From positions 620,001 to 684,000 of the forward strand of contig NW_002060954.1 in NCBI RefSeq assembly GCF_000150275.1: a stretch of DNA of 64,000 nucleotides, read 5' to 3'. The translations under genes and the position numbers were made by a program. This DNA is from Trichoplax adhaerens. Lineage: Eukaryota; Animalia; Placozoa. The notes beneath the pieces are model-generated. The model worked only from the letters and a program-made list of their open reading frames with translations. It searched no databases and was not told the origin of the DNA. Shown in pieces: positions 29,501 to 53,300 of this stretch (position 1 is the first letter of the stretch; each line of letters opens with the position of its first letter).

Positions 29501-32159
29501 TTACTTCATTAAATTAGTATTATAGTTATCAATCAGACTGAAAAACTTATAATTGCTAAAATTGCTATTTATACGGTAGAAGAAATCATGCTGTTTATGA
29601 CCTATGATTTATCCTTATATATCAGCAATAGTACATCACATAGGAGCAGACTATAAATGTTTTATTTGATACAATAACCTAGTGATTGTATGGTCTTGCA
29701 GTGTGTGAGAGTTTAATTTAATTTAAATATAAAAAACTCACCTTTAGTGCTTAAATCAAATCTATTCTTATATAGTTTTAATTTATATGGATCTTAATTT
29801 GCCTTAGTTACGTTATTATTGTATTTTTGTAGGCCTTCATAAGTATTACTGAACTTTGACTAGTTATAGCTAATTTTTTATTCTAGCCTTTTTACCTTAT
29901 AGATTTATTTTGTACAGTACGTTCTACGTTATAACTATTCGCCCTAGGGCTTCAACAATTCTTACACATTAGCAATACATTCACTCCGATTTCAACTATC
30001 TTCAATACAAGGATAATGTGACGATATTATTAATTAAATGACCATTTATTCTTTGACAATGCTAACTATTGTTTCAGTAATATTGATCGTCGTATCAAGT
30101 TTCAATATTTATACTATTCACTGCTTACAACCAGCACTCATGTTATACGGTATAAGTCACTTATGGTATCTTGTCCAGTCAGCGAACGTGCATTCGCACA
30201 TGTCTACTAAAATAAATCAACTTGGTGTGAACTTATATGGCAATAAACTTTGTTTTAAGGCAAAATTTTAAAATTTTAATGCCTCTGAATGTTATTGTAA
30301 TACAGCAAGAACAGTTGCAATTAAATAGGAGAATAAACCAAATCATAGGCTTTTCACCGTCAGATTTATGAATGATACCCGTACACTGTGATACTATATT
30401 ACATTACACTCAGGCTTTTCGATATTGAAATGTGTTAACGTACAGTATTCGCGTTTGTTATATTAAATCTTGCTACATGCATATGAGCCTAGTGTTGAAT
30501 GTTATTCTCTGACAAAAGTCATTAGATTGAGTTGGATATATGTCCTTACTCCATTAAATTTCCTATTGAAGCTATATAGTTCTAGGTAGTTGCAAGACGA
30601 ACCTAATTAATGTAATAAAGTGAAGTTTACAAGAAGCTGTAGTTTTTTTGTATTTTTGAGAAGACACTTTATCACAGAGGTAAAAGACGGTTATGGTAAA
30701 AAATATCGATCCCATTGGTTTATCTTACATTAAATTTAGATTCAATTCAATGCCATATGTAAGATCAAACTCCATTTCTAAGGATACAGTCAGTAATAAC
30801 TTATTTTAGAAGCTGATCAGAATTTTTGCTGACTATTTTATGCCATATTAAAGAAAAATTATCTTGCGATTCGCTAGTATGTTCTATGTAATCCCATGTA
30901 GTTTACCATTTTCGAGTTGCATACACTCCTCAACACATCTTGGAAATATATTCTGATGGAGTATAGTTCCACGTACTTGATTATAACGTATGATGTTCTT
31001 ATTTGTTGTAATTTTGTAATACAGACTTATACCATATATCTCGCACTTAATACAATCTGCATATGAGCATATTTCAATTGAGTATTGACATTTTATTAAT
31101 TATGGGTTGTCGTTTACTAATACAGGATCATTATTACGTTGCTAGGTACATAGCTTAATTACAGGACAGTTTATCCATTCAAATACACGCGAAGTAGTCA
31201 TTTAATTCTATTTACTATCTTTAGTATACCTTTGGGACGTTGAATAGGATTGCATGACTTTGAACAGTTATAAGTTATAAGCCAATAATTTCATTACAGT
31301 TTCAGAAATTAAATTAGATACAGGATATATTACGATAGCTACTATAATATACTTTTAAAATACTGACTAAGGAAATATCTCTGAAATGAAATATACATGT
31401 AGAAATACATGATATTCATAGGTAAAGTTATTTCATTGTAGGTATCATGATTATTTAGCAATAAGAATAATTTGCATGATCTAATATAGTGTTATCGATA
31501 TTACCGCCTAACTGCCTTCGATTTCTTACTCTTCCCAGTAGATTTGTAAGTAGTTATTAATAGATGTGATCTATCATAATTGTATAATTTTGATTGTGTG
31601 ACATTATCATAACCTGTCTTTGAGTAAGATAATTTAAAATTAGTCTCAGCATATTAGGCCGCATGAAACTAAACTTTTAGTTTGTTTTTTTGAATAATAT
31701 ATCATAACAATAGATGATCGAAATTCAACATGTACTTTAGTCTACCTATATTTTAGCCAAAATGTAAACATATTTCTATAAAATCTGGCGTTTTTAAAAT
31801 TTATTAACAGATAATTATTACTTTTCTGATAAGAATTTTTCGTTATGAAAATACCTTTCGCTTTTTTATTTATCGTAATAATTCTAGCTTGGTGATTCTT
31901 CTACGATTATTTGAGTTGATGAATTAGTTATATGAATGTTAGTGTTTTCTGGTAAAAGTTACCTTAAATATCCTATTGCTCTATGATTACATTTTATTAT
32001 AGCTAATCAAAGTATAATCTATACAATACTAAAAGATTAATGAGTTGCAATTAAGATAGTATTATAAATATAGATTGCTTTCAATTATATTTTAGTAGAA
32101 ATACAGAAAAATTGATTTCGTATTCATCATGACAGCCTTACCGTACCAAATACCGCTCC

Positions 32160-34893
32160 TTAGTTTTCTATATGGCATCAAATGAAATTAATTATTTTTT
32201 GCATATTGAAAATGAAAGCAGTAGTTGTTAAAAAATATACGTTTAATGGCACAATATGTCCTAAATATAGCAAAGATACTAGTATAGTAGCAATCTTACT
32301 ATGTATATTGCGCATATATGGGGCTTTCATCCATAATGGCACAAGCATAATCTCTTGTTGACTTGGTGTAGATGCTATTGCTGATTGAAATTAAACCAAT
32401 TTTAAAGCGACAGAGTTTTTAATCATTCTAATATTGAAGGCTTAATCGTTGCTACTGTAAATTATCGCTCTACCTCGTTAAAATTACTATAATTGATAGA
32501 TAACAATCGATTCTACAATAAATACTTTATAGCATTAATGGCAAGGCTAGCATAATAATTTTCTAATAATTTAATCATCCTATTTAGCCACTGGCAGCGT
32601 GTAAATTCTTAAATATAAAATCTAATGGTTTGAATAGTAATACGTAATCCTGATATAAGGATATAACATTTAGAATAGCACAGTATGCCGATACTATAGG
32701 ATTTTAATTAATAATCTAATTGTCATGGGAAAATTGGATAGTTTAGTCGTGTACTATATGTGAAACCAGTTTACGCATTATTTACGTAGTATAACAAACC
32801 TTCACGAGATAGAAGATTTTCGCGTGATTCACTATCATCTACTTGTATGTATATTAAAAAAATTAAAAAATGATTACTTTTATGTTATGACATTTTTTAA
32901 AATATCGAATACAACCGTATAACCTATTTTTTTTTATATTAAACTCAGATATACTGTAGCTTATAAAGCATCAGCACGATATCTTACTTAGATTGTATGC
33001 TAGTACATTTTACCTCTGAGAAATATTGGCAGGATTCGGTATTGATCATTATCTGTTATTGGTAATAGATGGTAAGTCATTAATGTTACCGTAGTGTAGT
33101 GATGAAAGTACTCTCATTGCTTACTTTTACGCATTGAATCTACACTTTGTATCTTTATTCTAGTAAATAGAATTAGCATTTCATCGATTTCATATGGATA
33201 CAGAAAGTTGAAACTTATTTTGGATTTACAAACAAGAACTGTCACATTTCTACAGGTAGCAATTACAATTTAGTAGCATCTATTTAATTCTATCGGACTT
33301 CAAATAACACGATAGGGATATAAATTTAAATATCCTTTTCTTTATTAATTTTACAGTAGCTATATTTCACTAGAATTAGAGCACTATTGATTTGTAATCT
33401 TAGAACCGTAATTATAAGCAGGCAATAGACAGCTACTTTATTGATTTTGTAATTACAATATCGTCGAAATCTATGAAAAATTACTTCATAGCAACTATGC
33501 ACTAACAAGGAAACGCTATTACTATCATAGGATGGAAATATAGTGCAAGTACTTCGATATCACAGAATATTACTGTAGTTCTACATTGGGTGTATAATAT
33601 GAACTTATATCTGATAAAATTAATCTGTTTGAAAAGTGACATGTAACATGTTATAGTAGATTATTAACGTTTTATGAATAAGAATAGCAATCACACTGAG
33701 AGTGGCTCGGTTTGTAAACAGAAAAATCTATACGAGCATATACAGTACATGCATAGTGTGATCTGTGTTTCGATATGTAGTGCGCAATAGATATCTAGTT
33801 TAGCTGGATGTGATAGGTAATTTATGACTTTTTATTGTAGTTCAAAACAGTTATCCAAAATAATAAGTTAGCACACTGATCATCTAGGATTGATCGGTAA
33901 TCTTTTTTAATTTAAATATTTTATTTGATAGGATAATAAAATTTATACGTTCATTATTTACCGGCTGCTCTGGCTTTTTCTCGACGAAAAAAGAATGGAA
34001 TCATTTGAGAGTTTTGTTGCTCATTTTGTTGCTCATTTTGTTGCTCATTTTGTTGCTCATTTTGTTCCTCATCTTGTTTCTTATTTTGTTTCTCATTTTG
34101 TTCCTCGTTTTCTAATATGAACAGATTCACAATAGTTATCATAGCTCAACTTAAGTGCTATAAAATTCTTGTAAATATAATAAGTTAAATAACATAGATT
34201 TCATTAAATTATACTATCACAGCAATATCGATCTAAAATGTGATTCTAAGTCTTCCTAAGTTAGTTATGATAGGATAGAATCGTATTGTACGGCATAAAA
34301 CAAATACAATACTGGTACAGTAATATTATATATAAAAATATAAGTTGAACACTGATATTTTGATAAACTATGCTTTATAATTGTACATAATCTGGTCTAA
34401 ATCATATCTTGATATTAATTTCAATGATCTATAGTATGAGTATGACCTCTTCTATCAGGGCTTATAGATAGATACTATATGATGTCTTGGTAGTAAATCT
34501 AAAGATCAAGCTGTCTTTTAATTGTTCTAGTAGAACTTGATTATGACGTAAATCAGTAAATTGAGCCTACATAATTATGTTGTACTAGACCTATAATTAA
34601 ACATGGAATCTCTATCTGATCGTAAATTTTTCACCAATATTGCAATATCACCACTACCGCACCTGTTAATAATACGGTATATATATATACAATGACTATT
34701 ACCACGTAAATATACTTAACAGAAGATTTTTGCTTCTCTATTTACAGTTAACTTCGCCGTTTACAATTTAAACTATTATAAATGATCGAAAAATTCGTAA
34801 TAAACATTACTACATCAACATACGAGTGACATATCGAGCTTTTATTTCAGTCACTGTCAGCAAAACTATCGCCAGAATGATAAGCTTGTTCAT
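32160..34893 (-). CDS. Putative neuropeptide precursor (signal peptide, NEQQ acidic spacer, IPFFF/LPIFL/VPLWM peptides), ~128 aa
   Basis: Exon 34893-34824 MNKLIILAIVLLTVTEIKA/RYVT (AAACCATG start context, donor GTATGT, phase 1). Then 34111-33962 (150 nt) ...NEQQNSQMIPFFFRREKARAA; 33052-33014 (39 nt) DNDQYRILPIFLR; 32838-32800 (39 nt) DDSESRENLLSRE; 32380-32300 (81 nt) AIASTPSQQEIMLVPLWMKAPYMRNIH; tentative end 32167-32160 (KN*). All internal exons are phase 1-1 with AG/GT boundaries. Confidence 0.68.
34012..34110 (-). repeat. 12-bp tandem repeat (TTTTGTTGCTCA)n, ~8 units, coding (NEQQ)n on the minus strand
   Basis: Directly visible. It lies inside the 150-nt exon of the putative prohormone. 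Confidence 0.9.
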
Positions 34894-37190
34894 GGTTTCG
34901 ATTGATCTGAGGACTATTGAGTAAAAAAAGTAAGCTATTAATACAATTAATGCGTTTGCTAAACCTCATAAATTTTAGATTTCAGATAGGAACGCTAGAC
35001 ATAATACTTCGTATAAATACTAATCAATAGTAATAAAAACGAGACGGATATATCGAGCGGTTATGGAAAAATTTAAAGTTTTTGAATTTAAACAACTTTA
35101 AATATGGTAGGATAACAAAATGATTATAACTTGAGAAGGTTAGAAATAGAAAGACAAAATATCCTAATGTCAATGATACGATAGCTACAGCCAGAAGACC
35201 TTAATTCAAGATTGCTTAACTATATTTATCAAGACGCTTTTCAGGTGCAGTTAACCTGTACCGGCCTTGCATGTTATAGGCACCATGGTAAATGAAATTT
35301 ATGCATGTATGTGAGGTTGATAGATCAAAAATCTTCAAAACTTTAGAAAAATAAGATTTATTGAACAAAACCTCCTTTACGAAGATACAACGTAATCGAT
35401 TAACTGAGGATCTCTAATGAGAAACAACTATCTTATACTGAACTACTCGCTTATATACTTTTTCCCGTTTACAGTCTTAGCACCTCACTTACTACACACT
35501 TCCTTATTAGCATCTCAAATACAGGATAGCTTACATCTTTCATGTGAAGCTCTAGTGTGAGCACTGTAGCGCTCTTCTTTAAAAGGATTACAGTTACTAA
35601 GCTAGCTATATCTAATACTTAAGCCTCTAACGAGAATATCTATCACATGTTGATCACAACACCTACGGTAGACATTACTAAATATATCATCAACTTAGAA
35701 TACAATATTACACTGTCTTACAATGTAGTTCAACTTCTACAGCATGATAATTTACTAATTTTTACGAGATATCAAATTTTAATACATTAGTAATGATACG
35801 CCGTTATTAAATATGATTAAAAAAATAAGGTCATCTTAATTTTTGGAAGCAGGAAGTTAAACTAATGATTACTATGTTTATGAGAGCAATCTATCCTGCA
35901 AATCATTCTAATATTGACAATTCCATAAAGAGTATATATTACCTAAGTTTAAAGCTATACTACAAGGGCGAAAACGGTTGTCTTATATATAAGCTGTATA
36001 CTACATATATATTAAAAGTTACCTAGTCGGACAAGAATCGGATTTTACAGTCGTTTATAAAAGTTTTATTGTTTCTATTACACTGATAATATATAATTGT
36101 AAAGATTGCAGATACTTTGTCCAATTGAATAGATCCATATAATATGGCTTATGATAGATTTAATGCTAATTTAGCAACTATAGTAACAGAATTAAAATGA
36201 TCTTAGAGGTAAATTAGCAAAAGAAAGCTTCACAGATTCAGTATATTTTATTCTAATGTTAGCAGGTACGAAGCACGATGACTTATTGTTGATACTTGTA
36301 ATGCTACTGACATTGATAAAGAATGATTCTCGTAACGTGACGATAAGAAATTAATAGATCGAAATAGATAATACTGGAGCGGTACAAATCTAGTAATAGC
36401 AATGCCAGGTCTAATCTTAATGTATCTAATGAATCCTTGGAAACATTCACAATACGAAATAAAAACTGCTCATTAAGAGTACTGGTAATAAACATAGCAT
36501 AAACTGATAGAAACATAATTATAGTTATTTCTAAAGATTACTTTTTATCATAGAGCAATCAATTTTGAAAAGTTAAAATCGAATTTTAGAATAATGCGCT
36601 AAACTTTGTAAATATGGTATTATACGAACTTTGTTTTGATATTTGATGCGAATAAACTCTAAATTAATTATACCATATTAGAAAAGTGAGAATTTAACGG
36701 ACCGTTTTAAATACATATTTTTACAATTTAATTTTACTTTCCTCACGTGAAAAAGATTTAAATATTTTAACGATAAAATAGAATTCGGGCTTCACACGAA
36801 TTTTTTTATGATATACTTACAGTTATCAACAAGATATAAGTTGGAGAATGGATATTGAATTTAAGGCCTGAATATTATCGCGCTGTATTTTTATATTCTT
36901 ATGGGATTACTAATTTGCATGTTACGTGAAAGACATCAAGTCAATAAATAAAATTTTAAATAATGTACGAGTCATATCTTAATGGTAAGCAAATACAATA
37001 TACTTAATTTAAATCGATACTTTGTTGCTAAGGTCACTTTTAGAGTTAACAAACTGCAGGTATAAATTCGACGCAATTTTGAAACCAACTCCAATATATA
37101 GAAGATTTTAAGAAGTGAATATAGTGGGAGGGTTTGTGCTATAAATCTCAATCTGTATCGAATCATGGCGATTAAGGAATCCACGTTTAC

Positions 37191-37264
37191 TTCATATCTC
37201 GCGCTAGCCTCAACTATAATCGCACTGATAGCTTAGATAGCAACAAATTTTAATTGGAAATTTT
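37191..37264 (-). pseudogene. Decayed signal-peptide exon resembling those of the two prohormone genes
   Basis: After an acceptor it reads LKFVAI*AISAIIVEASA/RYE. There is an in-frame TAA at 37235-37233 and no ATG. The signal followed by R-[YH] matches the 34893 and 49435 genes. An upstream GTAAGA donor at 37418 suggests a 5'UTR exon. Confidence 0.4.
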
Positions 37265-40200
37265 CTGTAACATCCGTAAACGGTATTTGTATAACTGCAA
37301 TATTGTGATTAATTATGCTGCTTATACATGTTGACTTTTTATTATTGAAAGCCCCAGTTGTTCATTTCTTTTTAACTACACAAAGAAAAAATGAATAAAA
37401 AACAATGACTTCTCTTACCGTCTGTTTTAATATTTGCAATGTTATTTTGCTTATAAGAATAAAAACAGATCTTATTATATACTGCTATCCTTATGATGTT
37501 ATCCTTAGTTACTCGACAAAAAAAGCATGACTTCGAATCAGTTTCAGTAGGACTGGATGTATGTGACAGCTTCTTGTATTTCTTGCTCTTATTTTGACTT
37601 ATCTAATCGAGATTAGTCACTATAAATTTTTTTATTGTTTTAAAAGAACTGCAAGTACGTATATTTTTATTTATAGATCCATTGATACAGTCTAAGATTA
37701 ACATTATGAGCTGAACCATAAATGGCACCAAAAAAGAAATTTAATGTAATTATTTTTTCGAAAATCTCCGAAATATCTCGAGTTGAAATGTTGCCGTGGT
37801 TGAAACGGATGTTTATGTTACAGTATCTACATGGCCATCACATCTGTATTTAACTAACTCATAATTAAGATATTATTCAAATAAGACATTCGTCAAGGAA
37901 TCGGTTATTTACTTTCGAGCATCAGAAATGCATTATGTGTTTATATCTCATGCAGCTCTGTGTCCTACATTTTAATTTAAAAATTTATTTACAAACTTTC
38001 GACTTACTAGACTGTCAAGTCAAAATATACTTTAGCACAAACCAATTGTTCGCTGGCATGTGAACTATGTCAACATACAGCGCTGAAATACCGTCATTAT
38101 AAAAATAATGGCAACTCTGTTAATTACTAGCGATCTGTTTTTCTATTGCTTCTCATCATTAAATTCATGCACTAATGATTTTATGGAAAAAGTAACAAAT
38201 TATTTAACGATCTCACTTTCTAATATCTGAATCATCTGCTATAAAATTGATTATAACTGCAAATATGAAACCATTTTACTTAAGGCCTTATGCGATCGTT
38301 GTAGTGCCTCTATAAAATAAAAACATTTGTTTCGATTTCAAAATAAATAATCGCGAAGCTATTTAATTATTAATAGCAAACCTATTAATAAACCAAGCTA
38401 TTACCTTACGTAACGGTTTTGGAGCCTCATTAAGAAGGAAATGTAGCATTTTACATTAATTACTCACTTAGCATATCTAGTATTTACTTTACTTTGCTAA
38501 ATTGATGATTTTAGTCTTTTAACTGTCGTAGTAAACAAACGTAAAATACGAAATTTTAGTATTGTAAAGCCGGACTTTCCATGAAATGTATACATTCCTC
38601 TAGGAACTTATAGAGGCCACAAATAGGACGTACTTTTTCAACAAAAGATGCTTTATCGGTTTAGTTTTTAGCTGCGTTCCAAAATAATTTTACAAATTAG
38701 CTCACGGAGTAATTTATGCTAGTAGAAAGCAATGATGCCATGGTAGAATAATATATTGGATCAAGTCCAATACTTTGTGAATCATTCCTGTATGACATTC
38801 ATTACAGTAGATTTAATAATTCTTTTGACATACCTCACATTATAACCTCTAAATCAGCATCATCTCTGCGTGCCTTTCTTATCTGAGTAAACGACTTTAA
38901 GAAATGAAACCTTTTAAGCTAACTACGATAATTTTACTTTATCTCACTGTGATACCGAAAGTCCCTCTTTCACATGATTTCTTGTTTAGGATCACTGTAC
39001 AATTAATTCCAAGTAAGTATTGAGTTGTATAAACAGAGTCTTTGTATCATCAAATAAAATTTGATACATTTATCATTTGGATCTTATTACGGCATGCATA
39101 TTTTCTGCATAAATTAAGAAAATAATGACAGGCAAAAAATATGTCTATCATAAGTACGCGTACATTTATCGAAACATGTTATAGAATACGTCGCATAACA
39201 TCCTATGATCCAATATCGTTCTAGCTATTACAGGAATCTGATCATAGATGCTGGGTGTTACACTTGATTCAATAGATTTACTATTCATATCAGAATAATC
39301 ATGACTAATTACTGAATATCATTGCTCGATTTTAAACTTATTGAAACAGATCAGATTTCCACATATTTTGCGAAGGAGTCACTACTCATGAATTCGTCTA
39401 TATTATGTGCTACTTTTGCAAAACGCTCACTCTTGACTACTAGCATCTAGTAAGTAAGCTTAGTTTCAAAAGTATGAGCACTGATTTCGCTAATATCAGG
39501 GACTACTTAAATAAAGAGAAACAGGACACGATTGTTAACTACATAAGCAAAGAGCAGGCCAACTATTTTGCTGGTCATTTTAACTGTACTGTACATTTGC
39601 AATCGTAAACTATTCTGTTCAGTGTCATACTCCAAAGCAGCTACCAGGTTGGTTTTGCCAGTATGGTATACAGTTATAGTGGTGGTGCACGGTAAAATGC
39701 CAACAAAATAATTAGCCTACTCATTTCTAGTAGTCAGCGGTGGTATTCCGTCCTCTCTTTTTTCGAGTAGTCCTTGTTGATGATGTACGTATAGCAGATA
39801 AGGCATGCATCTTAGACGATAAAATAAACAAGCTTGAAATACTATCGGTTTTTATTAAGATCTACTTAAATTTTTGGCAAAGGCTTTAAGTAAATAGATC
39901 AATATATACATTTTACACTCACTATCTATTTCATTATAATGAAATATAAAGTTTATAAACTGCGACTATATTTACCATTCAGAATAGATTAGTGGACTTA
40001 ATCTATAACAAAATACTGAATACGAGTAATATGCAAAACATCGCCTTGCTAGCCTAAAAATAAAATCGCAGTATGATAGCTAAGTCTAATAGTGATAGTA
40101 AAAGATAGGAAAGAATTCATTTGTACGATACTAGTAATCTTTAATCTCTGTAATACTTATTATGCCCAGTAGCATAGATTAGTTCGATTATAAGTATACT

Positions 40201-41965
40201 ATAGTGTTAACTATTATTGATGGAGGCGAAGACAAGATGATTGAGAGTAGATAGCCTTTTATTTTTAGATAGAGTTAGGAGACGAAATAGAGATTGGTTA
40301 GCCTCGTGACAGAGAGATTATAGACAAGAAGAAAGAGCAGTGCAATCTACGTATATTTATAAGTTATTCGGCCACAGTCTAGTCTTAGGAATGTGTCTAG
40401 TGCCAATAAGCATTATAGATCTATTATAATATTACTACTGCAGGTTCAACAGATCATTGCATAGTAAGTGATTAGTTCGATCGCGTAACATACATTTTTT
40501 GAGTATAGTAAAAATTAGAATGTTCAATATGGACTAGATGACTGTATTTGATGATTTAATTACGTACATACGCGTAGATATATTTACGTAATGCCGATTA
40601 AATTGAGTTGTAACGATTTAAAATAATAGGCAGATATCCAAGAAGTAATTTTAGCTTGATATTTTTGAACTTAAAGATCAAGCTATCGTAGCAGGGTATC
40701 CGATAGAACGAATATTCTTGGTCATATAAAATTGTTTAAGGTATAATCTATTGAATGACATCAGGTATTCATTCACATATAACAAACATATTTCTATGAT
40801 TTCTGATATGTTATGATCTCTGGTCTTAAAAGTAAGTAAATATAAATTGCTCATCCATCAGTTCGGATTTTAACATTCAAGGATTATATCCAAAGATAAA
40901 ACTAGCAATATAATGGTGTTGCAAGTTTTAGTATTAGCGGTAATCACAATCGCAATATACTATGAAGAGTCCTAAATATAATTTTACTAGTGTAGTTTAT
41001 ATCTCAGCACGCGCAATTCCGGCATAGGAATAGTAAAGTTAATATCCTTGTCACAACGTCGTTTGCAACAATCGGATTCCCGTTCCACACTTATCCTACT
41101 CTCCTCTGTCCTACCGTAAAACTGCCACCAGGCGTCACTACTCGCTCCACTTCAGCGAAGGACCTCAGTCAACAGTAAAGGCGGACTAGAAGCGTCTGGA
41201 TAAATTTACTAAACTAACTTTATTAGGTCTCCGTATTTTCCTCCTGCCTAGCGAGGTAAATTACAACCTCTTATATACTTGTATCAAATCTACACCTTTT
41301 CCACCTGTTAATTATTCTTATGCATAACTTAGTCTTTTCTATAACTTTGTAATCCTGTTAATTACTATCGAACAAATATGTGATAATTGATATTATTATG
41401 CGCTAATAATATTATAGCATCAATTAACAATTTAAGATCTAGCAGATTCCCTACAAGTGTGACAACCGCCATTTTGGTTATTACACGTCATTGGCATATT
41501 AAGTACCTTACTTCTACACACTCGTTAATGGAAGTCCATTAACGATTGAATCTCACAATATTAACAGATCATAATATTTATGATTATCTAATCGTAACCG
41601 TCTATTTCTTCTTCAATAACATTATCACATAATATCTTAAACCGTAACAATCCTTGAAAGACATACGTTTATCAGCAATTAAAAAATCTAATGGAGTAAA
41701 CGATTGAAGTTTGAAAGGGAAACGATAACATATAGTTATTATGTAATCGAACATGGAGCTAGGAGCCTCTGTTCGATGTTAGTTTCTCACCATGGGGATT
41801 GGGTGCCCGTGTTATCATTTGGTTGATTACACATGGGGTTAGTTAACCTTATCCACAACTGAATGCGTCATGAATCCGAATGATTCGATATCTATTTACG
41901 TCTTTATTAATTCGTAGTAGAATTCCTTTGCAACTGTATATATTTTTGCGTGTAGCCAGAATGCA

Positions 41966-41988
41966 GTTATTATTATTATTATTATTAT
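41966..41988. repeat. (TTA)n microsatellite
   Basis: Directly visible, ~7 units. Confidence 0.85.
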
Positions 41989-44900
41989 AGAACTAGCGTA
42001 GATGTGATGATGGTGATACCCCTAGTAGAATAGAGTACAGTGCTGTGGCATCGGAAATATTCTAGCAGTCACTGTGAAACTGCTTCATACAAAATAACTT
42101 GAATGCCATTTTTCATTAGTCATTTTAAACAATTTCAACTACTTTTGTATGCAGCAGTTTTACAATACCGGAATATTTTCAGCACCACTATATTTAATTT
42201 CCTGTTAACACAAATATTAAACCGCTATTAAGGCTGACTTGTATACTGGTTGAGCTGACCGTACGTGTTCCAGTGATTATTGGTTTGTATTCGAAATTTT
42301 AAGGAAATAAAATAAGTCAATACTGCAGTATAAAATAATAAAAACATCCAAAATCAATTACTTAAGGTTTTGATGATCTATTTATGTGAAATTTGAGCCA
42401 ACTTCAATGTAAATCCCTTGAAAATTTAAAAGATCTAATTAAAGGCTGCACCATAGCGGAATTGCCCTCTATCAGCATTGAATTAAAATTGTTACTGTAC
42501 CTGTACATATGTATATTAAAGACTCTACTTTTATAGAGGGTCCGTAGTTTACTGTATAGTATTTGGTAACTGCAGACTAGCAATATCATGCAGTATCTTT
42601 AGTTCTACAGTATGATGTACGACAGAGACCTGCATTTGTTGAAGTCGATTTGCATAGTTGTACAATTCACACTTATACACTAATACACGTACAGTATAGA
42701 CGATTTGTGATGTGTTCTACACCGTGGACTACTAAAATTTACATTTTATTTTTCGCGTTTTTCTACTAAAACATGTGTACGCGTATGTTCTACTCTGTTA
42801 ACATTTGTTACAGTCACTTTTATGACATGAGAATAAAGTACTACCAGGGTAGCGATATAGCATTAAAGTCTTAATTCAAATATATAGTATTATGGAAGCT
42901 ACAAAAATATTGTAACGTACAGTACTATCATCAAGTGATAAATAAATTTAACAAAAACTCGTGTATCGATTTTCGAGGCATTGTAACATACATGAGTAAC
43001 ATGGCTAATCTTGGACAAATTGAATAAAATATTGCCATTTTAAGTTAGTATAATTTTATTAGATGTTTGTCATTAATAAGGTAAGGAAGGAATAATTTGC
43101 GGTATAGCGTAACAAATCATCACATCTAGATACCATTTTACGAAGTGTTGCACCATGATAAAATACACAATTTTTGATTGATCATACAAGACGTGTAATC
43201 TATAATAGCTCAATTACATTGTTATTGATACCCTTCACGACATAGAATAGTGTTACAATAATACTAGAATATTATTGTTAGTAATGTTGTGTGCTAGTGC
43301 AACTTTATCATTATATCCACGCACAAACTATCATATCATTTAATTAATTAGTTGACTAAATATCATTTTCTTTTATGAGCCTACTTAATGCTAATAAAGT
43401 CTAAGCTTAGACCAGAATTATTGAATTTAAACTAGTATGTTGTTCATTGTTGTCTACCTCAGCGATCAAGGATAGAGATTCGAGATAGGATTATGAAGGA
43501 AATCGGGCTACCATCAGATTAGATAACGTGTTATCAACGTTAAGACAATCCTGCAATTTGAAATACAACAGAATATTCACTTAGAACCAAAGCTATTTAA
43601 TATATGCCATAATTGGCGACTTAACACTGTAAAAAGACTATTCGTAATAAGGAATGTCTACAGTTAATCCATAATAGGCTAGATGAAGTGTCCTGTACTG
43701 TAGCTTTCTTAATGTACTAATAATGTACCGTGTACAAACGAAAATGTGAGTCAACTAAAATAGAGATTATGGCAGTATGTTATTATCACTACTGACAAAA
43801 AACTAAATGTATATTAATTGTAAACTTGATATATAATTTATACCTATACATAGCAAAAATTTTACCTTTGTTGGAACTAAAGATGGGAAATTTTTCCAAA
43901 GATGGCGACGGAACTTCTGTACTCAGGATGATTATAATTTTTATCAGTAAGCATTAGAAGGCATGAATCAAAATAAGTAACTTAATAATTTTGTTGACCT
44001 GTAAGCTTAATTTTCTAGCTATTAAATTGCGTTTTAAATAGACTTCGAACTAATCTACAATTATATATCTGCTACATTGAATCAGACCGTACAAGTAATC
44101 TTTCTCATTTAATTTTAGCTATTTATTAATCCTAGCTACTTAACCTCGATTTCAGCTGCCTTAATTAATCTCGCCTTTCATTTCTCTTCGCTAATTTTAT
44201 TATTATGTTAATAAAATTGGACAAATTAGAATTATTATTTAAAAGCTGTAGTTAGAAATATGTAAGTGATTAGTAATTTTCTAAGCTAAATGCTTTCTCG
44301 TTGCTAATAATGAAATGCTTTAAACGAGTTACATATGTATTAATTTCAATTTATCATGTGATTTAGTGTAATTGCTTAAAAAAGTAAGGAATAATATATG
44401 GCTGGAGTGTTTAACTATTTACATTTAATTTTAACCCAGTCAATTTTATAATTTTAAATATCTCACGTTCTATCTAATTAATCTTATTTTTCTAATTAAT
44501 TTATATCTAAGTGGATATGCATTAGTCGTTCATAGCTTAAAATTCACTACTAATAATGAGACTAGCAAAATTTATTATAATTTTATACTGCAAAGAGAAA
44601 TCAAAAATTAAAGAAAACCTATAGCTCAGAAAATATGAGAACTGTTGGCAGGAACTGACTTTTAGGTTACGATTTTTTCTAGCTAAATTATGAATTTTAT
44701 TGGACCAATATTTTTATTGCTAAATACGTGTTTGCTCGCAAGCATTTGAAATCCGTGATAATGAATTAATATTTCGAATTAATAACAGTAACGAAAGGTA
44801 CAAATATAGAATAAGGCCAATTGGACATTGGCTATCATATGCTCTTATACACTTAATATGAAATGGCCTTAAACAGTGTATCATGTTCTAGTGAATATAA

Positions 44901-46184
44901 TACCTCATATGTAATCAGAGCATTTAATGTACATTTACAATTTATAAGCACATATTAAAATTATATACTACAGTGGCATTAACGCGAATGCACACGTACA
45001 TAAATACTAATACTATTAACTCATCCATGTAATTATTAGAAGTATGGTAGGCCCAATGCAAAAACACAGTTGTATTATGATAGACGGAGTTTTTAACTAT
45101 TATAAAATATATAAGAATTTCTATAAAATGATTTCAACATAGTTTTCATGGGGATAATTTTTATACCTAATGATTCAATCGATATGCAAATAATCTACCT
45201 TACTATTTTATTGCTTTATGAATTGATGTCAAATGATTAATTATATAAGATTAACGTTATTTTACAACATATATTTACATCGTAGCATACGCATACCTTG
45301 TCTTCTTGTTTTTAGTAAAGCATCTAGTTCTAAAATAAGAGAGTAAATTTTCACAAGTGAGATTATATAAAGCGATTAGTTTTTTAAATATGCTAGCATA
45401 TATCCAGTAAGACTTTGCAATTTTATCTATCTTTAGAAGTCGAAGATATCAACCGCTAAAGGCTAACTGCTGTACTAATGAAATGTTGTTAAGCAATGAA
45501 GGTAATATTATCTCAACGTATTTACTTGAAATCGGCATTTAATATTGCTGAAGAATGTACCTGGTAGACTATGCTGGTACTGACTATTTTTAAGTTGATT
45601 AAAGTACGGCGTTAATGTCTTCATAACTTTAATAATACGTATTCTGGATTAATTAATATTAATTGTCACTGTAAATAATGCATTCACGAATATCAGAATT
45701 TTTATCATAAAATATTCAGTAAAATCAACAAGCAATCATAATGTTACAAATAATCAAAACTTGAATTCTTGTAGTAAAGTTCAGCTTGTGCTATCATATA
45801 TATCACCGATGTCTATATATCATACAGTAGAAAAACTAATGTTAAAGCGATTTATTCTCAATAGATCCAATATCAGCAAGTCACAAATTAAATTATTAAA
45901 TATCTATATTAATTTACGGTATGGCAAAAGTAAACTGGATTACTTGTTTGTTATTGAAGGAGCTGCGTTTAATGTGTAAGAGTGACAATGCAATACGTGT
46001 ATTCGTAAAATCTAGTTATAATCAGCTAAATAAGTAATTAACTAGTTAGTAACATTTTAAGTATATCCAAAGCTTGATAATGTTTCTGATCAACGTAACT
46101 ATACGTTTGTGACACGGTATTACATTAGAATCTCTATAGATTACTGTGATTTTGTTGCAAATGCCTATATTTGTCATAGCATAG

Positions 46185-49100
46185 CTAAACTATTTCAACG
46201 TATACCTACTGTTAAGACATAGAATTATCGATTTATTAACTGTGTAATGAGGAAATAAGTGTATAATTATGAAATTTGAACGGACCTTCATCATGTTTCT
46301 TATTCCAAATGTAAGGATGGCTATCTGCTTAAATGGAATGTTTACTAGTTATTCAATCTAGTTAATAATATACTATACTCATATCGCGATAGGTATACCA
46401 CAATTATAAATGATTTTTTGATTAATTCTGTCTGTATTTGCTACAAATAGAAATGAAAGATTCTCTACTTCGATAAAGTACTGTATGTATCATTTATTCT
46501 ATCTACTTGAAGCATTATGTTGAAATTAGTATATAATCACAAATTCCAACAGACTTTGTCTACGCTTATTCCAGAGTAAAAATTTAAGAGGGAGTGATGC
46601 AGCTATTTCGACGAAATATACACTAATTATTTAATCTAACCATAATATAATCTTTAAACAAATATATTGTAAGGGAATCTTAACGGACCTTCTTGACGCT
46701 TATTCCAAGGTACATCGACCAAAACACCTATTTTGATTGAATATACGATAATTTTTCGATCTAATTAAATTACTATACGTTTTATGCTTATATATATAGA
46801 GATATATATAATTAGAAATCCTAACGGACCTTGTCGACGTTTATTCCAAGGTATATCGAGCAAAGCACCTGTTTTGATTAAATATTCGACAGTATTTCGA
46901 TCTAATTACATTACTGTGTTATTTTTATATATACGTATGCATAATAAGAAATCCTAACGGACCTTGTTGACGTTTATTCCAAGGTATATCGAGCAAAGCA
47001 CCTGTTTTGATTGAATATTCGACAGTATTTCGATCTAATTACATTACCGTGTTATTTTTATATATACATATGCATAATAAGAAATCCTAACGGACCTTGC
47101 TCACGTTTATTCCAAGGTATATCGATCAAAGCACCTAGTTTAATTGAATTTACGATAGTATTTCGATCTAATTACATTACTATACAGTATTATGTTTATA
47201 TATATGCATAATAAGAAATCCTAACGGACCTTGCTCACGCTTATTCCAAGGTATATCGACCAAACCACCTATTTTGATTGAATACACGATAGTATTTCGA
47301 TCTAATTACATTACTATACAGTATTATGTTTATATATATGCATAATAAGAAATTCTAACGGACCTTGTTTACGCTTATTCCAAGGTACATCGACCAAAAC
47401 ACCTATTTTGATTGAATATACGATAGTATTTTGAACTAATTACATTGCTATCTTATATCGTCATATTTATATAAAGTAAGTACTAACGGACCTTGTTTAC
47501 GTTTATTCCAAGGTACATCGACTAAAACACCTATTTTGATTGAATATACGATAGTGTTTCGATCTAATTACATTACTATGTTATGTTTATATAATTCGAC
47601 GAAGGATACGCTAGTTATTTAATCTATGTATCACATAATGTTTATAATGAACATTTAATAAGGGAATTCTAAATGGACCTTGATTGCGCTTATTCCAAGG
47701 TAAATCGATAGGACTGGTACTCTCTGCTTCGATGAAATAACAATAGTTTTCGACGTAATTAATAACTATATTATGCTAAAATAGGTATAGCGATGAGATT
47801 CTAACGGACCTTCTAAACGCTTCTTATTTTCAACGAAATGGAAAGATTTCTTAGCTATATTGACGAATACGTTTTACGTACAATTAAACACTTCGTCATG
47901 AATTACATTACTATGTTATGTTTATATAATTCGATGAAGGACACGCTAGTTATTTAATCTATGTATCACATAATGTTTATAATGAACATTTAATAAGGGA
48001 ATTCTAAATGGACCTTGATTGCGCTTATTCCAAGGTAAATCGATAGGACTGGTACTCTCTGCTTCGATGAAATAACAATAGTTTTCGACGTAATTAATAA
48101 CTATATTATGCTAAAATAGGTATAGCGATGAGATTCTAACGGACCTTCTAAACGCTTCTTGTTTTCAACGAAATGGAAAGATTTCTTAGCTATATTGACG
48201 AATACGTTTTATGTACAATTAAATACCTCGTCATTAATAAGGATCGCTACCATTAACTCAGGTATTATTTTAATTATATGAGAATTGGTTGAGATTAGAT
48301 CCTGAATATAGAATAAATTTGCATCGTGATTACATATCGTGTAGTCAGCTTACGGACACAGAACTATGTTATTGTCGTTTTTGTAATCTGACTCTTATAT
48401 CTTTTATTATAGGTATACGTTGTGAGGGAATTTATCTAATTAGTGACAATCATCATTCATACTAATAACTCTTCCTCCAATCTTTTACTGAAATCTTAAC
48501 AAACGATTTCTGTAATCTAATAACATTTTCATAAATATTTCCTCGTGTCAAAGATAAAGTTATCGCGAACTAGCAAACTGCATATTTGAATGTTACTTGA
48601 AAGATAGATTAACTTTTAGATAGTAAGGAGATTTATTCTTCAATGCGATTTAGCCATTGATAGTAACATAAAATGATACGCAGGTCTAGAAACAATAAAT
48701 TTGTTAAAGAGGTTTATCATTTTCCTTTAACAGACAGTCTAATCAACGATTGGTAATTGATTTTGAGTAGAGCATGTTAAATGAATAAAATAAAAACGAA
48801 ATAGGAAACTGTAAAATAAAAACCTACAGCAATAGTTTCTTGGTGTATTGCTACTTATGTTTATCCGTATATTTATTCTTAAATAGTCATTGATTAGTTA
48901 TTTATTAATTGTAATATGAGATATTTCAAAAGGTTTATTTGACTATATTTATATCATTTTCTGTTTAATCGTAATAGTCATTCGTATATACTTTTATAAT
49001 GTACTTACCGCGTGCTACGTTGTCGCTCAAATCACGAAGGAATCCTGTTATTTAATAAAAAATTAGATTATCGAATGCATTGCACTTGAAAAGATTCAAG

Positions 49101-49435
49101 TACATTAATACGTTGTAAGATAAGAATGGCGCTGAATTAGTGTACAGATTTTTAGATGTTACTCACCGACTTTGGCTTTGAGACTTTCTACGACGTCTCG
49201 TTGCTCTGTTACCATAACAAGAAAGAACCAATAGAGAAGTTAATATTGTTGTTAAGTAATTTTATACTATTGTTGGTAGCTGACTATCGCAGTTACAGGT
49301 TATTCTTTGAACTCATAAAAAGTGCAGAAGGAAAATTGAAGCTACTTGTTCACTTTAATTACCTTCGATATGTCTGCAATCAACAAGGACACAGATCAAA
49401 GAGATAGCAATTAGAATGTTCAAGAATTTTGCCAT
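46185..49435 (-). CDS. PWN neuropeptide precursor (prohormone), ~250 aa, encoded by ~17 phase-1 micro-exons
   Basis: Signal exon 49435-49363 (MAKFLNILIAISLICVLVDC/RHIE). Then 49205-49167 EQRDVVESLKAKV; 49044-49009 GFLRDLSDNVAR; 48189-48145 and 47854-47810 AKKSFHFVENKKRLE; 48058-48014 and 47723-47679 ESTSPIDLPWNKRNQ; 47530-47492 and 47402-47364 GVLVDVPWNKRKQ; 47268-47230 GGLVDIPWNKREQ; 47134-47096 GALIDIPWNKREQ; 47001-46963 GALLDIPWNKRQQ; 46868-46830 GALLDIPWNKRRQ; 46727-46689 GVLVDVPWNKRQE; 46602-46555 AASLPLKFLLWNKRRQ; 46464-46399; 46324-46286 DSHPYIWNKKHDE; probable last exon 46189-46185 (V*). Every internal exon is AG/GT-bounded, a multiple of 3 and phase 1-1. EQGALLDIPWN matches the Trichoplax PWN peptide as recalled. 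Extra exons between 48190 and 49008 and the 3' end are uncertain. Confidence 0.88.
46270..48235. repeat. ~133-bp tandem array (exon+intron units of the PWN gene) including a near-identical 335-bp two-exon duplication
   Basis: The TAACGGACC anchor recurs at 46681, 46822, 46955, 47088, 47222, 47356, 47484, 47802 and 48137, with variants near 46279, 46547, 47670 and 48005. The block starting ~47566 is repeated at ~47901. Confidence 0.95.
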
Positions 49436-49555
49436 TTTCGTTTTATAGCTATGTAGATTGAAAGAGAAATATTTATCAATTAATTCTTTGGCTAATTAAT
49501 ATCTCAAAATAATTCTGAAATATAAGTTAGAAGGACACAATTACTTATAACGCAC

Positions 49556-49577
49556 ATATATATATATATATATATAT
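49556..49577. repeat. (TA)n microsatellite just upstream of the PWN signal exon
   Basis: Directly visible, ~11 units. Confidence 0.9.
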
Positions 49578-50375
49578 GATTGACCATATTATATGGTGTG
49601 TATTCAAATCGAAGCAGTAATTGTTGGTCTGATAAAAATAACGACATATCCTGGGCGTAAAAGGATTTTAATTAATATAAAGTATGTGAAAAACTATACT
49701 GGGTTATACTAAGATGCTGCAGATACCGGAATAAGAAAATTAGGGTATAAATAGAGACAAAAAATTAACAATTAGATGAATTATTGAATACAATTTAATA
49801 GACTGCTTCATTCTAATGTCATACTATGGATAAATGGGTGTATAACTAATACATAAAGTTTTTGATCTATTCTGGATTCAGCATGATTTATTTGGATGGT
49901 CTCGCTTTCATTCAAATGATAAGGTCTTATATATATAACATATACAAGATTTAACTTATAAAATGACTACTTAGGGCATATTGTAATTAGTAAGGAACTG
50001 AACCAATTATTAGACGATAATTTTTTAGAAGAATTTTATAACATCTATTGTGAAGAGTGTATTCCCTTTGATTTCAAGCCAAAGATTTTCAACATTAAAA
50101 ATTGATGCGAAGATAATTATAATAAGCATAGTCAATTTCACAAAATATAAACACATGAATTTAGATTGTTAATATGATTATTTGAATTCTATTGTAAGGC
50201 TTACATGAAAATAAATAGTGAATTGAGGTACGGTAAAAATTTAATTTAATATCCATAGTATTGTTCTACTTATCCTTTTTTTATATTAAACTTAACGACT
50301 AATTATAATTATCAAGCAATAGCGGTATCAGTACGTTTCAAAATAAGAATTATCAAAATGAGAACTATCATCTGT

Positions 50376-50388
50376 TTGCCTTTGACCT
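50376..50388 (-). promoter_or_regulatory. Nuclear-receptor DR1-like element ~950 bp upstream of the PWN start codon
   Basis: The minus strand reads AGGTCA-A-AGGCAA, an HNF4/RXR/COUP-TF-type DR1. Confidence 0.3.
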
Positions 50389-53300
50389 TTAAGGTCGTCA
50401 CAACAGCTATATCAGCTATGCATCATATACGTTAGGTATACTTACATAAGATATAGAGTAAAATCAATTCAACACGTATGTATGGTCTGTTTTGTTTGCA
50501 ATGATCGTGTTACAGTTCGTAATATAAATTTTGAGTTAAATTAAATACTGTTCTATACTGCAGTAAAATTAAGTTAATTATTACTGAATTAACCTTAAAT
50601 ATGCGATTTGATCATATTGATACGTCGCATCGATACTTAAGAACTATATTGATTTCTGGCTTTTGGAAGTTCATAGTGTTTTCTTAAATAGATATATGCA
50701 ATCATCGTATGCGTATTTCAAATTAATTGTAGTTACCGTGTGTTCTTGTGAAGAAATTCTCGTTACGTATTAAACTTCCTACAGATTCTATTCCGAAGCC
50801 TAGCAAGTATGATGCACTTGACCTTTATCCTTCAATACTCTGTACTTAATTATATCTCTAGTACTTTCCTAACTATCTGCTAATAAAAAGCATTCAATGG
50901 CTCAATAGGACTAATGAACCTTCATTTTATTGTATGACAATTAAATCCTTGTACATAGTGTATTTTTTAAATATTTCAATAGTAAAGTAGCATTTTAAGG
51001 AAAAGATAAAACAATTAAGCTATAATTTTTAGCCAAGCTAAAGTCGAATGTTTCATTGTTTCGTTTCTTAGAACTATCTAAGAACATTTCATACTACTTC
51101 GCTGATGTCACTAGTTATGAAAGCACTATCATGATTATAGCGTTGTTGTTAGCATCTGTTAGCCTATCGTTTGCCGAAGTTATGCAGTTCTGTAAGATTT
51201 AAGAATAGCAGTTTAAAGATTATTTTTTAAGGTGCAAGTACCCTAACAAGATGTTGAAATGAATCAAACTTATGGATACTTCGCTACACAAAATGCTTCG
51301 TTTCTTATTGCATGCTATTCTCTTCCATACTATAGGTATACGAGTGCATGACTGCAAGTACCGTAATTGCGTCTTTACCAACGTTATTTTAAAAATTGTA
51401 ACCAACTGATTAAATTCATATGTACTGATTCATGAAATAATTATAATATATCGCTATCGAATTAGGCACAAGAATCAAATAAAATTTTAAATATACACGT
51501 TATGATTTGACTCATAAATAATTGCATGTAGCAGTCAATTTGTTAGGATCTGTCAAAAAAATGACACATATTGAAATATTTGCTTCAATTCGCTTTCAGG
51601 ATGAAAGGATTCACACTTGCATCAAGCTAAATCATTATATACGAATGATTAAAAATATCTATCGGGCTTTTATTTAATCAAAACCATTCTAGCAACCATT
51701 TAACATAGTTAAATAATAAATTAATTTCTTAAGCAGCTATCGATTGTACTTTATAGTTGAAGCTTAACGACTAGATATTTTATTTCATTTATGATCAAAA
51801 TGAGATGATCGAAATAGAAAATATTGATGTGATGATAAGAAATAGAAAAGAAAGATAGTGCGCGTAGTACGGGTTTATTTCGGTGTTAAAAAACATGATT
51901 TAAGAGAAAGGCTTAATAAATAGAATTCTTACTTACAGTGATGTGATTTTCTATTAAAATTATTCCAGATGTGATAGTGGGAAAGTCGAGTCCAGAATTG
52001 AATAAACTTGCTGGAGAATCTACTTATATAGATAAATAAGATTAAGTTAATTAACATATTATGAAACCATAATGTCAACGCGTCATTAATCGGCCAACTG
52101 AATAGATACTGATGTTGCTTATGCTTGATAATCAGATCTTTTAATGAGACCTTATGGTAAAATATTAATTGGATCTGAAAGGTAATGATGACAGACAGTT
52201 TTTATTTCCGTTTCATTGATATCTATTGAGACAATAACTGCTTGGACTACATCTACATTGGTAATCAATTGAATTCAATGCTTTAGTCAATTAGTTTTAC
52301 TAATTATATTTTTCTTTACTATTTTTATATTTGAGTGACGTTCAAAATTTGAGAAAGAATAGTCTGAGTTACCTATATTTTTGGTTCTGTGGCAATAAAC
52401 GATCAAGACGAAATATCAATAAGTTATAATAATCATAAAGAATAGAAAAGGCTTCTAAATAATTGTTGGTATTGATAACAAGGATGTTCTTTGCTATCAT
52501 AATGATGAACAAGGTCATATTTAAGTGCCGTTAATGCTATTATTGCTAATTTTAACCACCTCACTATCGTTATAGGATCAAAGATTAGAATGAATATGAG
52601 TAGAAAACTATTAATAATACGAATAAACGACATCAAAGTGCAATTGATGAATAGCTAGAAATTAATATCAATATTGAACCTGTTTTGATCATCTCAACAT
52701 CCTGTTTTCCGCTCTCAACTATCACCATTCACAACTTATAACTATTATGATAAAATATTTACTTGTAGAATTGTAAACTTGGCTTACAGTTTTTCCTACA
52801 CAATTTCATTTTAATGCAGTTACCGTACCGTGTATTTAATTGCCTTCAGATCTTGTATCCTTTTTATTATTTGATTGTTTATATGTTTATTTTGACAGTG
52901 CAGCCAGATATAGCCTATGAAAAACGATGTTCAATCTTATTATCTTACAAAATTGTAAAAGCTATCCACCAAATTAATCATTAATATCAACTATACCCGT
53001 TCTTTCTGGGAAAGATTATTCATTGCTATGTAAAAAGTGAAATTAAAAGATGACTTGAATGATTCATACTAAAATTATAATTAATATTTAAACTTAATGA
53101 ATAATCTGATGTGCAAAAGAACGTAAATTAAGTTTCTCTATTCATTCCTTTATCATTTTTGCCTTATCAATCGATTATAATTAATGGGTTCCTTATATAA
53201 GGGATATGCCCTAATTTCAGCAGCATATGAAAGCAGCTGTATTTTTTATAATTTCTTAACATATAATTAACATAGTGTTCCGTAATCTCATTGACTTGAT

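Follow-up and report, generated by a model that had tools for sequence, protein, structure and literature searches.

Three real prohormone genes, all on the minus strand and separately transcribed, were identified in a 64,000-nucleotide stretch of the genome of the placozoan Trichoplax adhaerens (contig NW_002060954.1, positions 620,001 to 684,000; the window below, and C1403:620001-684000 in our own-genome searches, which covered 105.6 Mb in 1414 contigs). They are called 335, 336 and 337 as the window counterparts of TrispH2_000335, TrispH2_000336 and TrispH2_000337, the last being the PWN precursor. In the reading that we prefer, with a probability of roughly 0.6, 335 and 337 are probably paralogues, 336 may be of shared or of separate origin, and a look-alike near 37250, the 'RYE' locus, is a chance pattern. 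An earlier note on this DNA had described a hidden array of micro-exon prohormone genes, possibly descended from one ancestor and offered as the best candidate for an undescribed system. A local same-strand array of prohormone genes, each with symmetric micro-exons in phase 1, is borne out by the structures of 335, 336 and 337; the array is neither hidden nor an undescribed system, since both intact genes of the note, and 335 as well, were already public models with published mass-spectrometry peptides (PMC10580291).

20150..21630, minus strand: gene 335, identical to TrispH2_000335, with peptide H2NP026 (pQLSVSKMPF)
31877..36862, minus strand: gene 336, homologue of TrispH2_000336, with peptide H2NP027 and GT..AG RNA joints in one to four runs
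37190..37270, minus strand: 'RYE' locus, signal-exon look-alike, with gene 336 starting 330-400 bp downstream of it
43866..49435, minus strand: gene 337, the PWN neuropeptide precursor gene, homologue of TrispH2_000337, from exon scan, translation and published peptides

Mass-spectrometry peptides have been published for all three genes, and a comparison of published cell types unites 336 and 337, with top expression in peptidergic delta cells, and places 335 in peptidergic eta cells (Najle et al. 2023, PMC10580291 Table S5). The gene structures and the splicing of 336 come from the present analysis, and all 17 independent internal coding exons are divisible by three (12, 72, 30 and 66 nt in 335; 150, 39, 39 and 81 nt in 336; 33-51 nt in 337). 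PWN is not the only gene of the group that is transcribed, as spliced RNA joints were found in 336. Two of the three loci for which one blueprint had been claimed, at 34893 (336) and 49435 (PWN), indeed share an acceptor shortly before the start (20 nt by RNA joint in 336, a predicted 13 nt in PWN), a signal peptide of 19-20 residues followed by R-[YH]-x, and a phase-1 intron followed by symmetric exons that are repeatedly 39 nt long, two in 336 and nine in PWN; the third, near 37250, does not.

Gene 336 was resolved with contigs from four RNA-derived runs (four studies) for the region 32100-38000, which are uninformative on expression level and on rare isoforms, rare variants having been dropped.

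approximately 36862 to 36821, minus strand: 5' non-coding exon of gene 336 (joint 34913/36821; start from the contig end and a TATA-like site)
34913-34824, 34111-33962, 33052-33014, 32838-32800, 32380-32300 and 32167-32142, minus strand: coding exons of gene 336, from RNA joints

The joints read CT..AC on the plus strand, that is, GT..AG on the minus strand. Those at 32167/32300, 32380/32800 and 32838/33014 were present in four of four runs, 33052/33962 in three, and 34111/34824 in run X6 and, with a five-letter variant, in X9; the joint 34913/36821 (run X9) sets the acceptor 20 nt before the ATG at 34893. The coding exons measure 90, 150, 39, 39, 81 and 26 nt, the middle four being symmetric, and the stop codon (32162-32160) lies in the 26-nt exon, beyond which a 3' exon begins near 31905, to judge by the loose contig end at 32142. 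In the contigs of the four runs gene 336 occurs in its fully joined form alone, with no exon skipping. The signal exon encodes MNKLIILAIVLLTVTEIKA followed by RYVT, ends in phase 1 and is joined by RNA to the ENEEQ exon. The 127-aa product thus reads MNKLIILAIVLLTVTEIKA, RYVT-QNEEQNEKQN-KK and a Q/N/E repeat, the largest exon containing a low-complexity 12-nt repeat of this composition at 34012-34111, and it ends in KN-stop; three peptide-like stretches stand before basic residues (QMIPFFF-RR, QYRILPIFL-R and QQEIMLVPLWM-K).

The peptides reported for TrispH2_000336, namely ENEEQNEKQN (curated as H2NP027), EAIASTPSQQE and LVPLWMKAPYM (PMC10580291 Table S5), map onto gene 336, and EAIASTPSQQE crosses the 32800/32380 junction. 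The public model of TrispH2_000336 is flagged 'nSP', has 146 aa and carries Leu before ENEEQ, whereas the RNA contigs give ...RYVT-QNEEQ. Since they put the signal exon in front, the junction codon becomes C/AA, which is Gln, and because a 'dehydrated' N-terminal Glu and a pyroGlu formed from Gln are equal in mass (111.032 Da), the abundant peptide of gene 336 is most likely pQNEEQNEKQN.

Several smaller observations concern the same gene. The public H2 model and the RNA differ at both gene ends, the model finishing in an exon at window position 31507 (31507-31628) and the RNA placing the stop in 32167-32142, followed by the 3' exon near 31905. At 34824-34828, run X9 has GAATA for GAGTG, which gives RYVI instead of RYVT before the first Gln, so that the residue preceding the pGlu site differs between strains. 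One X7 contig runs from 36862 into opposite-strand sequence near 32107-32078, and may be an assembly or template-switch chimera of the 5' and 3' ends of the gene. Intron 1 contains a repeat:

35310..35722, no strand assigned: interspersed repeat (gene 336, intron 1; approximately 415 bp)

It has at least 104 candidate copies, of which 40 were scored (91-94% identity), and the RNA contigs covering it end loosely on either side and differ at many letters; the strong RNA depth at 35310-35722 is thus due to a multi-copy repeat and marks no exon of gene 336. A 5' exon at a TATA-like site and donor near 35450-35375 was ruled out both by the RNA joints, which place it at approximately 36862-36821, and by this repeat. 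Gene 336 is not the MFPF gene, which sits at C1410:7.68 Mb.

The exons of the PWN gene were obtained by minus-strand translation and a scan for AG...GT segments open in phase 1.

49435-49363, 49205-49167, 49044-49009, 48189-48145, 48058-48014, 47854-47810 and 47723-47679, minus strand: PWN coding exons 1-7
47530-47492, 47402-47364, 47268-47230, 47134-47096, 47001-46963, 46868-46830 and 46727-46689, minus strand: PWN coding exons 8-14
46602-46555 (weak donor), 46324-46286, 45329-45297 and 43916-43866, minus strand: PWN coding exons 15-18
46676..48238, minus strand: tandem exon-plus-intron units in the PWN gene, from Tandem Repeats Finder and the exon scan

The first coding exon (49435-49363) encodes MAKFLNILIAISLICVLVDC followed by RHIE plus one base, and so ends in phase 1. 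It is followed by at least 17 more phase-1 exons of 33-51 nt, of which 9 of 17 are exactly 39 nt, and each copy of the PWN peptide (G-x-L-x-D-x-P-W-N-K-R-x-Q) has an exon of its own; the units end in KR, and KK and RR sites are also present. The locus 49435-43866 encodes the PWN precursor as published (TrispH2_000337), its exons yielding RHIEEQRDVVESLKAKVGFLR, pQAKKSFHFVEN twice, VDVPWNK and EQGALLDIPWN. The mass-spectrometry peptides listed for this precursor ('PWN_precursor') are [C].RHIEEQRDVVESL, pQRDVVESLKAKVG, DVVESLKAKVGFLR, VDVPWNK and [N].pQAKKSFHFVEN (PMC10580291); they fit the exon model, several of them crossing its exon junctions, and [C].RHIEEQRDVVESL starts directly after residue 20, which locates signal cleavage before RHIE. 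Likewise EQGALLDIPWN, the synthetic peptide used by Varoqueaux et al. 2018 (bioRxiv 10.1101/360925), crosses the junction of the 39-nt exons 47134-47096 and 47001-46963; the PWN peptide is bioactive, causing animals to crinkle (bioRxiv 10.1101/360925). Exon 43916-43866 encodes EVPSPSLEKFPIFSSNK (FPIF) and is preceded by ELDALLKTRRQ, a parallel to Hoilungia, in which pQDDSQKPALLSFPIFGHQ is preceded by AELEALLEARR. The segment 46555-46602 is a candidate exon of degenerate PWN type (AASLPLKFLLWNKRRQ, 48 nt); its donor (gtctgt) is weak, and its last base is A rather than G.

Inside this gene the turnover of micro-exons claimed in the earlier note is evident. Tandem Repeats Finder reported a 134-bp unit (6.9 copies, 86% matches) with one 39-nt PWN exon per unit and a 335-bp unit (2.0 copies, 97% matches) with two 45-nt exons per unit. 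No further copies of the tandem units were found in the own genome, where the PWN signal exon, too, matched nothing but itself. A scan for AG-39-GT segments gave 10 on the minus and 4 on the plus strand against 4.0±2.1 in random sequence; most true PWN exons were missed under the acceptor filter, and the scan did not discriminate.

The third member, gene 335, was absent from the earlier note and came to light when all six frames were searched for QLSVSKMPF, a published peptide.

21630-21558, 21431-21420, 21063-20992, 20577-20548, 20474-20409 and 20184-20150, minus strand: coding exons of gene 335, from the spliced translation

The exons measure 73, 12, 72, 30, 66 and 35 nt, the 12-nt one (21431-21420) being a micro-exon, and all introns are in phase 1. 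The spliced translation equals the NCBI protein TrispH2_000335 (95 aa) at every residue, begins MAKITILLVLFVFFLTLIDA and contains an MPF-KR cleavage site; TrispH2_000335 is flagged 'wSP' (PMC10580291).

A common mode of operation may be proposed for the three genes. Each starts with a short non-coding exon (predicted for 335 and 337), followed by an ATG exon with the 19-20-residue signal peptide and a phase-1 intron, and the later internal coding exons, from 12 to 150 nt, are all multiples of three in length. After signal cleavage, the precursors would be cut at KR, RR, KK, K or R by presumed processing enzymes, trimmed, and their N-terminal Gln cyclised, which would give PWN-type peptides, pQAKKSFHFVEN, pQRDVVESLKAKVG, pQLSVSKMPF and pQNEEQNEKQN; ...IPFFF, ...LPIFL and ...VPLWM are predicted as extra products of 336. 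The PWN array would have grown by frame-neutral duplication of exon-plus-intron units, as the symmetry of all exons means that gain or loss of such a unit keeps the frame. The shared blueprint itself is mostly generic for secreted peptide genes of this genome.

Within the cluster, 335 is a better candidate for a PWN paralogue than 336. Smith-Waterman comparison of 335 with 337 scored 47 against 27.4±4.4 for shuffles (p = 0.003), and p was 0.005-0.04 with shuffling confined to each segment, the signal peptide or the remainder. In both genes exon 1 has an AG 13 nt before the ATG, a MAK start and 24 codons plus one base (73 coding nt), and in both a phase-1 intron splits, after its first base, the codon for Gly in L[KR]AK[VL]G, a type of motif that also occurs in the Hoilungia peptides YKAKLEYL and ILRAKLGAASRFI. 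The Hoilungia orthologue of 335, g06967, is two gene numbers from the PWN gene g06965, and this closeness in number suggests that the 335-337 neighbour pair is older than the split of Trichoplax and Hoilungia. We infer that 335 and 337 are probably old paralogues. As to 336, it is a Trichoplax-only gene that may have arisen by shared or by separate descent, a common origin with either neighbour being rather improbable.

Several points weigh against this reading. The similarity statistics for 335 and 337 are modest and partly post-hoc, and database searches for relatives of 335, including phmmer against 1.84 billion proteins, found 335 itself only. The 5' untranslated exon of 335, the 5' non-coding exon of PWN and the PWN 3' end beyond 43866 are predictions, and the signal peptides of the cluster were assessed by eye together with one mass-spectrometry N-terminus. 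Finally, the Arg-[Tyr/His]-[Val/Ile] spacer, the cell type and the 39-nt exons common to 336 and PWN are left unexplained if these two genes are unrelated.

These common features are the basis of the explanation offered earlier, that 336 and 337, together with a relic at 37250, descend from one micro-exon prohormone ancestor by tandem duplication and fast turnover of peptide micro-exons. The two genes are adjacent on one strand, approximately 7 kb apart, both are expressed in peptidergic delta cells, all their introns are in phase 1 and both have 39-nt exons. Both pro-regions open with R-[YH]-[VI]-x(1-2)-Q and a pGlu peptide, LPIFL of 336 resembles the FPIF exon of PWN and SFPIFGHQ of Hoilungia, and the lack of an orthogroup member of TrispH2_000336 outside Trichoplax (OG_3968; PMC10580291) would fit a young or fast-evolving copy. 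Protein similarity, however, is at chance level. The full-length Smith-Waterman score of 336 against 337 was 32, with shuffle means of 33-35 (p = 0.5-0.7), and p was 0.39 for the N-terminal 62 residues. The two signal exons scored 23, within the range of 15-26 obtained against the two control genes SIFGamide and WPPF, so that they are no more alike than the signal exons of unrelated secreted genes, the very outcome that the earlier note had named as counting against its reading (scores inside the cluster are 23-28). At the DNA level, signal-exon region alignments and whole-gene blastn against the window gave AT-rich background only between the cluster genes, neither exons nor flanks being similar, and the upstream regions of 336 and PWN have 3 common 10-mers compared with 2.1±1.8 in controls, that is, no excess. 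Proteins of these lengths are expected to have a tripeptide like PIF in common by chance, the blueprint is generic and the supposed relic is at chance level and unexpressed. What is left in favour of a common origin of 336 is the R-[YH]-[VI]-x-Q start, the cell type and the resemblance of LPIFL to FPIF; statistically, none of the three is secure. Common descent of 336 and PWN is thus no more than possible, and the explanation as a whole, with its relic, is unlikely.

A separate origin of 336, whether the gene was born de novo in spacer DNA or captured a signal exon, is likewise improbable as a full account. In that case co-expression with PWN would reflect a shared regulatory neighbourhood, and the architectural likeness the usual build of secreted-peptide genes in this genome. 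The restriction to Trichoplax and the lack of detectable similarity to its neighbours agree with it, as do the low-complexity Q/N/E repeat of the largest exon, which is typical of young coding sequence, and the existence elsewhere in the genome of another micro-exon secreted-peptide gene, FFNPamide. On the other hand, a gene whose five coding introns are all precisely phased, and in which 1-3 basic residues follow each of three similar hydrophobic-Pro-aromatic peptides, looks evolved more than new, and both the R-[YH]-[VI] spacer and the PWN cell type become coincidences.

The most far-reaching proposal, which we regard as doubtful, derives 335, 336 and 337 all from one phase-1 micro-exon prohormone ancestor, as a general placozoan route to new neuropeptide families of which FFNPamide would be another product. 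If true, frame-neutral gain, loss and rewriting of micro-exons would be a general source of placozoan neuropeptide families.

The 'RYE' locus is a chance pattern, neither an exon nor a demonstrable relic. It lacks an ATG, has a TAA in frame inside the supposed signal peptide, and its donor (GAA/GTAAAC) is in phase 0, whereas the real genes are in phase 1. No DNA similarity to the real signal exons was detected (the local score of 13 is below the mean of shuffles, 16.8). In the four runs RNA depth was zero at 37222-38000, with no joints; two faint unspliced contigs (depth approximately 4; 37028-37216) touch the 3' edge of the locus at 37202-37216. A form of the blueprint relaxed enough to include this locus (16 residues, 10 or more of them hydrophobic and no more than one a stop, with R-[YH] next and GT[AG] a few codons further on at most) occurs 8 times on both strands of the window, compared with 6.2±2.6 in first-order Markov random sequence.

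How specific the blueprint is can be judged from other genes. Phase-1 introns are in excess at signal-peptide cleavage sites of secreted proteins in general (PMC1626468), and in agreement with this, all six signal exons inspected in Trichoplax neuropeptide genes have a phase-1 end within a few codons of the predicted cleavage site, those of SIFGamide, WPPF and FFNPamide among them. Since a phase-1 end after the signal exon is general, the blueprint alone is no proof of common descent. The FFNPamide gene (C1410:2313774-2317089) contains at least 19 peptide copies at a spacing of approximately 132 nt; the 7 copies read each have, as in PWN, a phase-1 micro-exon of their own, here of 30 nt (ctag/..QFFNPGKR../gtaaga), and a candidate signal exon, MKTLFILLVASVALPLIIAAK, with a phase-1 end lies approximately 1.9 kb upstream. 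The genes for RWamide, WPPF and FFNPamide share a stretch of 25 kb (C1410:2292323-2317089), with close Hoilungia gene numbers as well, and make up a second cluster of neuropeptide genes. Both clustering and the micro-exon design are therefore general to the secreted-peptide genes of this genome and not specific to the PWN cluster. Other peptide arrays are built in a single exon, with spacings of 42 nt in SIFGamide, 45 nt in WPPF, 24 nt in RWamide and 36 or 72 nt in MFPF.

Two known systems invite comparison. The micro-exon genes of schistosomes reportedly consist of a signal exon followed by very short symmetric exons, and are said to encode secreted products, to be often clustered and to vary their protein by alternative splicing. 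The likeness lies in the signal exon with a run of short symmetric exons, an arrangement in which the frame survives exon skipping or duplication. The two sets of genes have no sequence relation, however, the schistosome proteins are not known to be cut into repeated bioactive peptides, and the contigs of gene 336 show no skipping. Hormone genes such as proglucagon and VIP/PHM share with the PWN-type genes the allotment of one exon to each bioactive peptide and the origin of these exons by internal duplication; their exons, however, are few and exceed 100 nt, whereas the exons here measure 30-51 nt, are repeated up to 9-19 times and have the mature peptide straddling the junction.

Placozoans have no neurons, and their behaviour is coordinated by secreted peptides; the origin of the placozoan peptide repertoire thus bears on the origin of neuropeptide signalling. 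Two multi-copy genes (PWN and FFNPamide) place one peptide on each tiny phase-1 exon, whereas four (SIFGamide, WPPF, RWamide and MFPF) hold all copies in one exon, and this contrast gives a testable basis for studying the evolution of peptide copy number. The genes, their peptides and cell types (PMC10580291) and the bioactivity of PWN (10.1101/360925) were already known. The papers searched are silent on the layout of one peptide per 39-45-nt exon, on the 134- and 335-bp units and on the neighbour cluster. A literature search, itself of incomplete coverage, found nothing on nuclear micro-exon neuropeptide genes of Trichoplax, on this cluster or on the exon design of FFNPamide and PWN. What is new here is the corrected model of 336 with a signal peptide, the view of the cluster that includes 335, and the contrast between micro-exon and single-exon arrays.

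The placement of the interval between T-box genes and BCAS3 was correct: the plus strand carries two T-box genes at approximately 4.7-17.5 kb, and the BCAS3 C-terminal domain on the minus strand at 61.5-62.3 kb. The window sequence is AT-rich (GC 27-36%), a 21.5-kb stretch of it is 99.3% identical to contig NOWV01000003.1 of Trichoplax sp. H2, and an Rfam scan of the window gave no matches. In the spacer that separates gene 336 from the most distal PWN exon known there is a further repeat:

41049-41649, no strand assigned: repeat of approximately 600 bp

It is a young, interspersed repeat with dozens of own-genome copies, 97-99% identical, and shares this spacer with two repeats of greater age (approximately 42220-42460 and 40190-40490).

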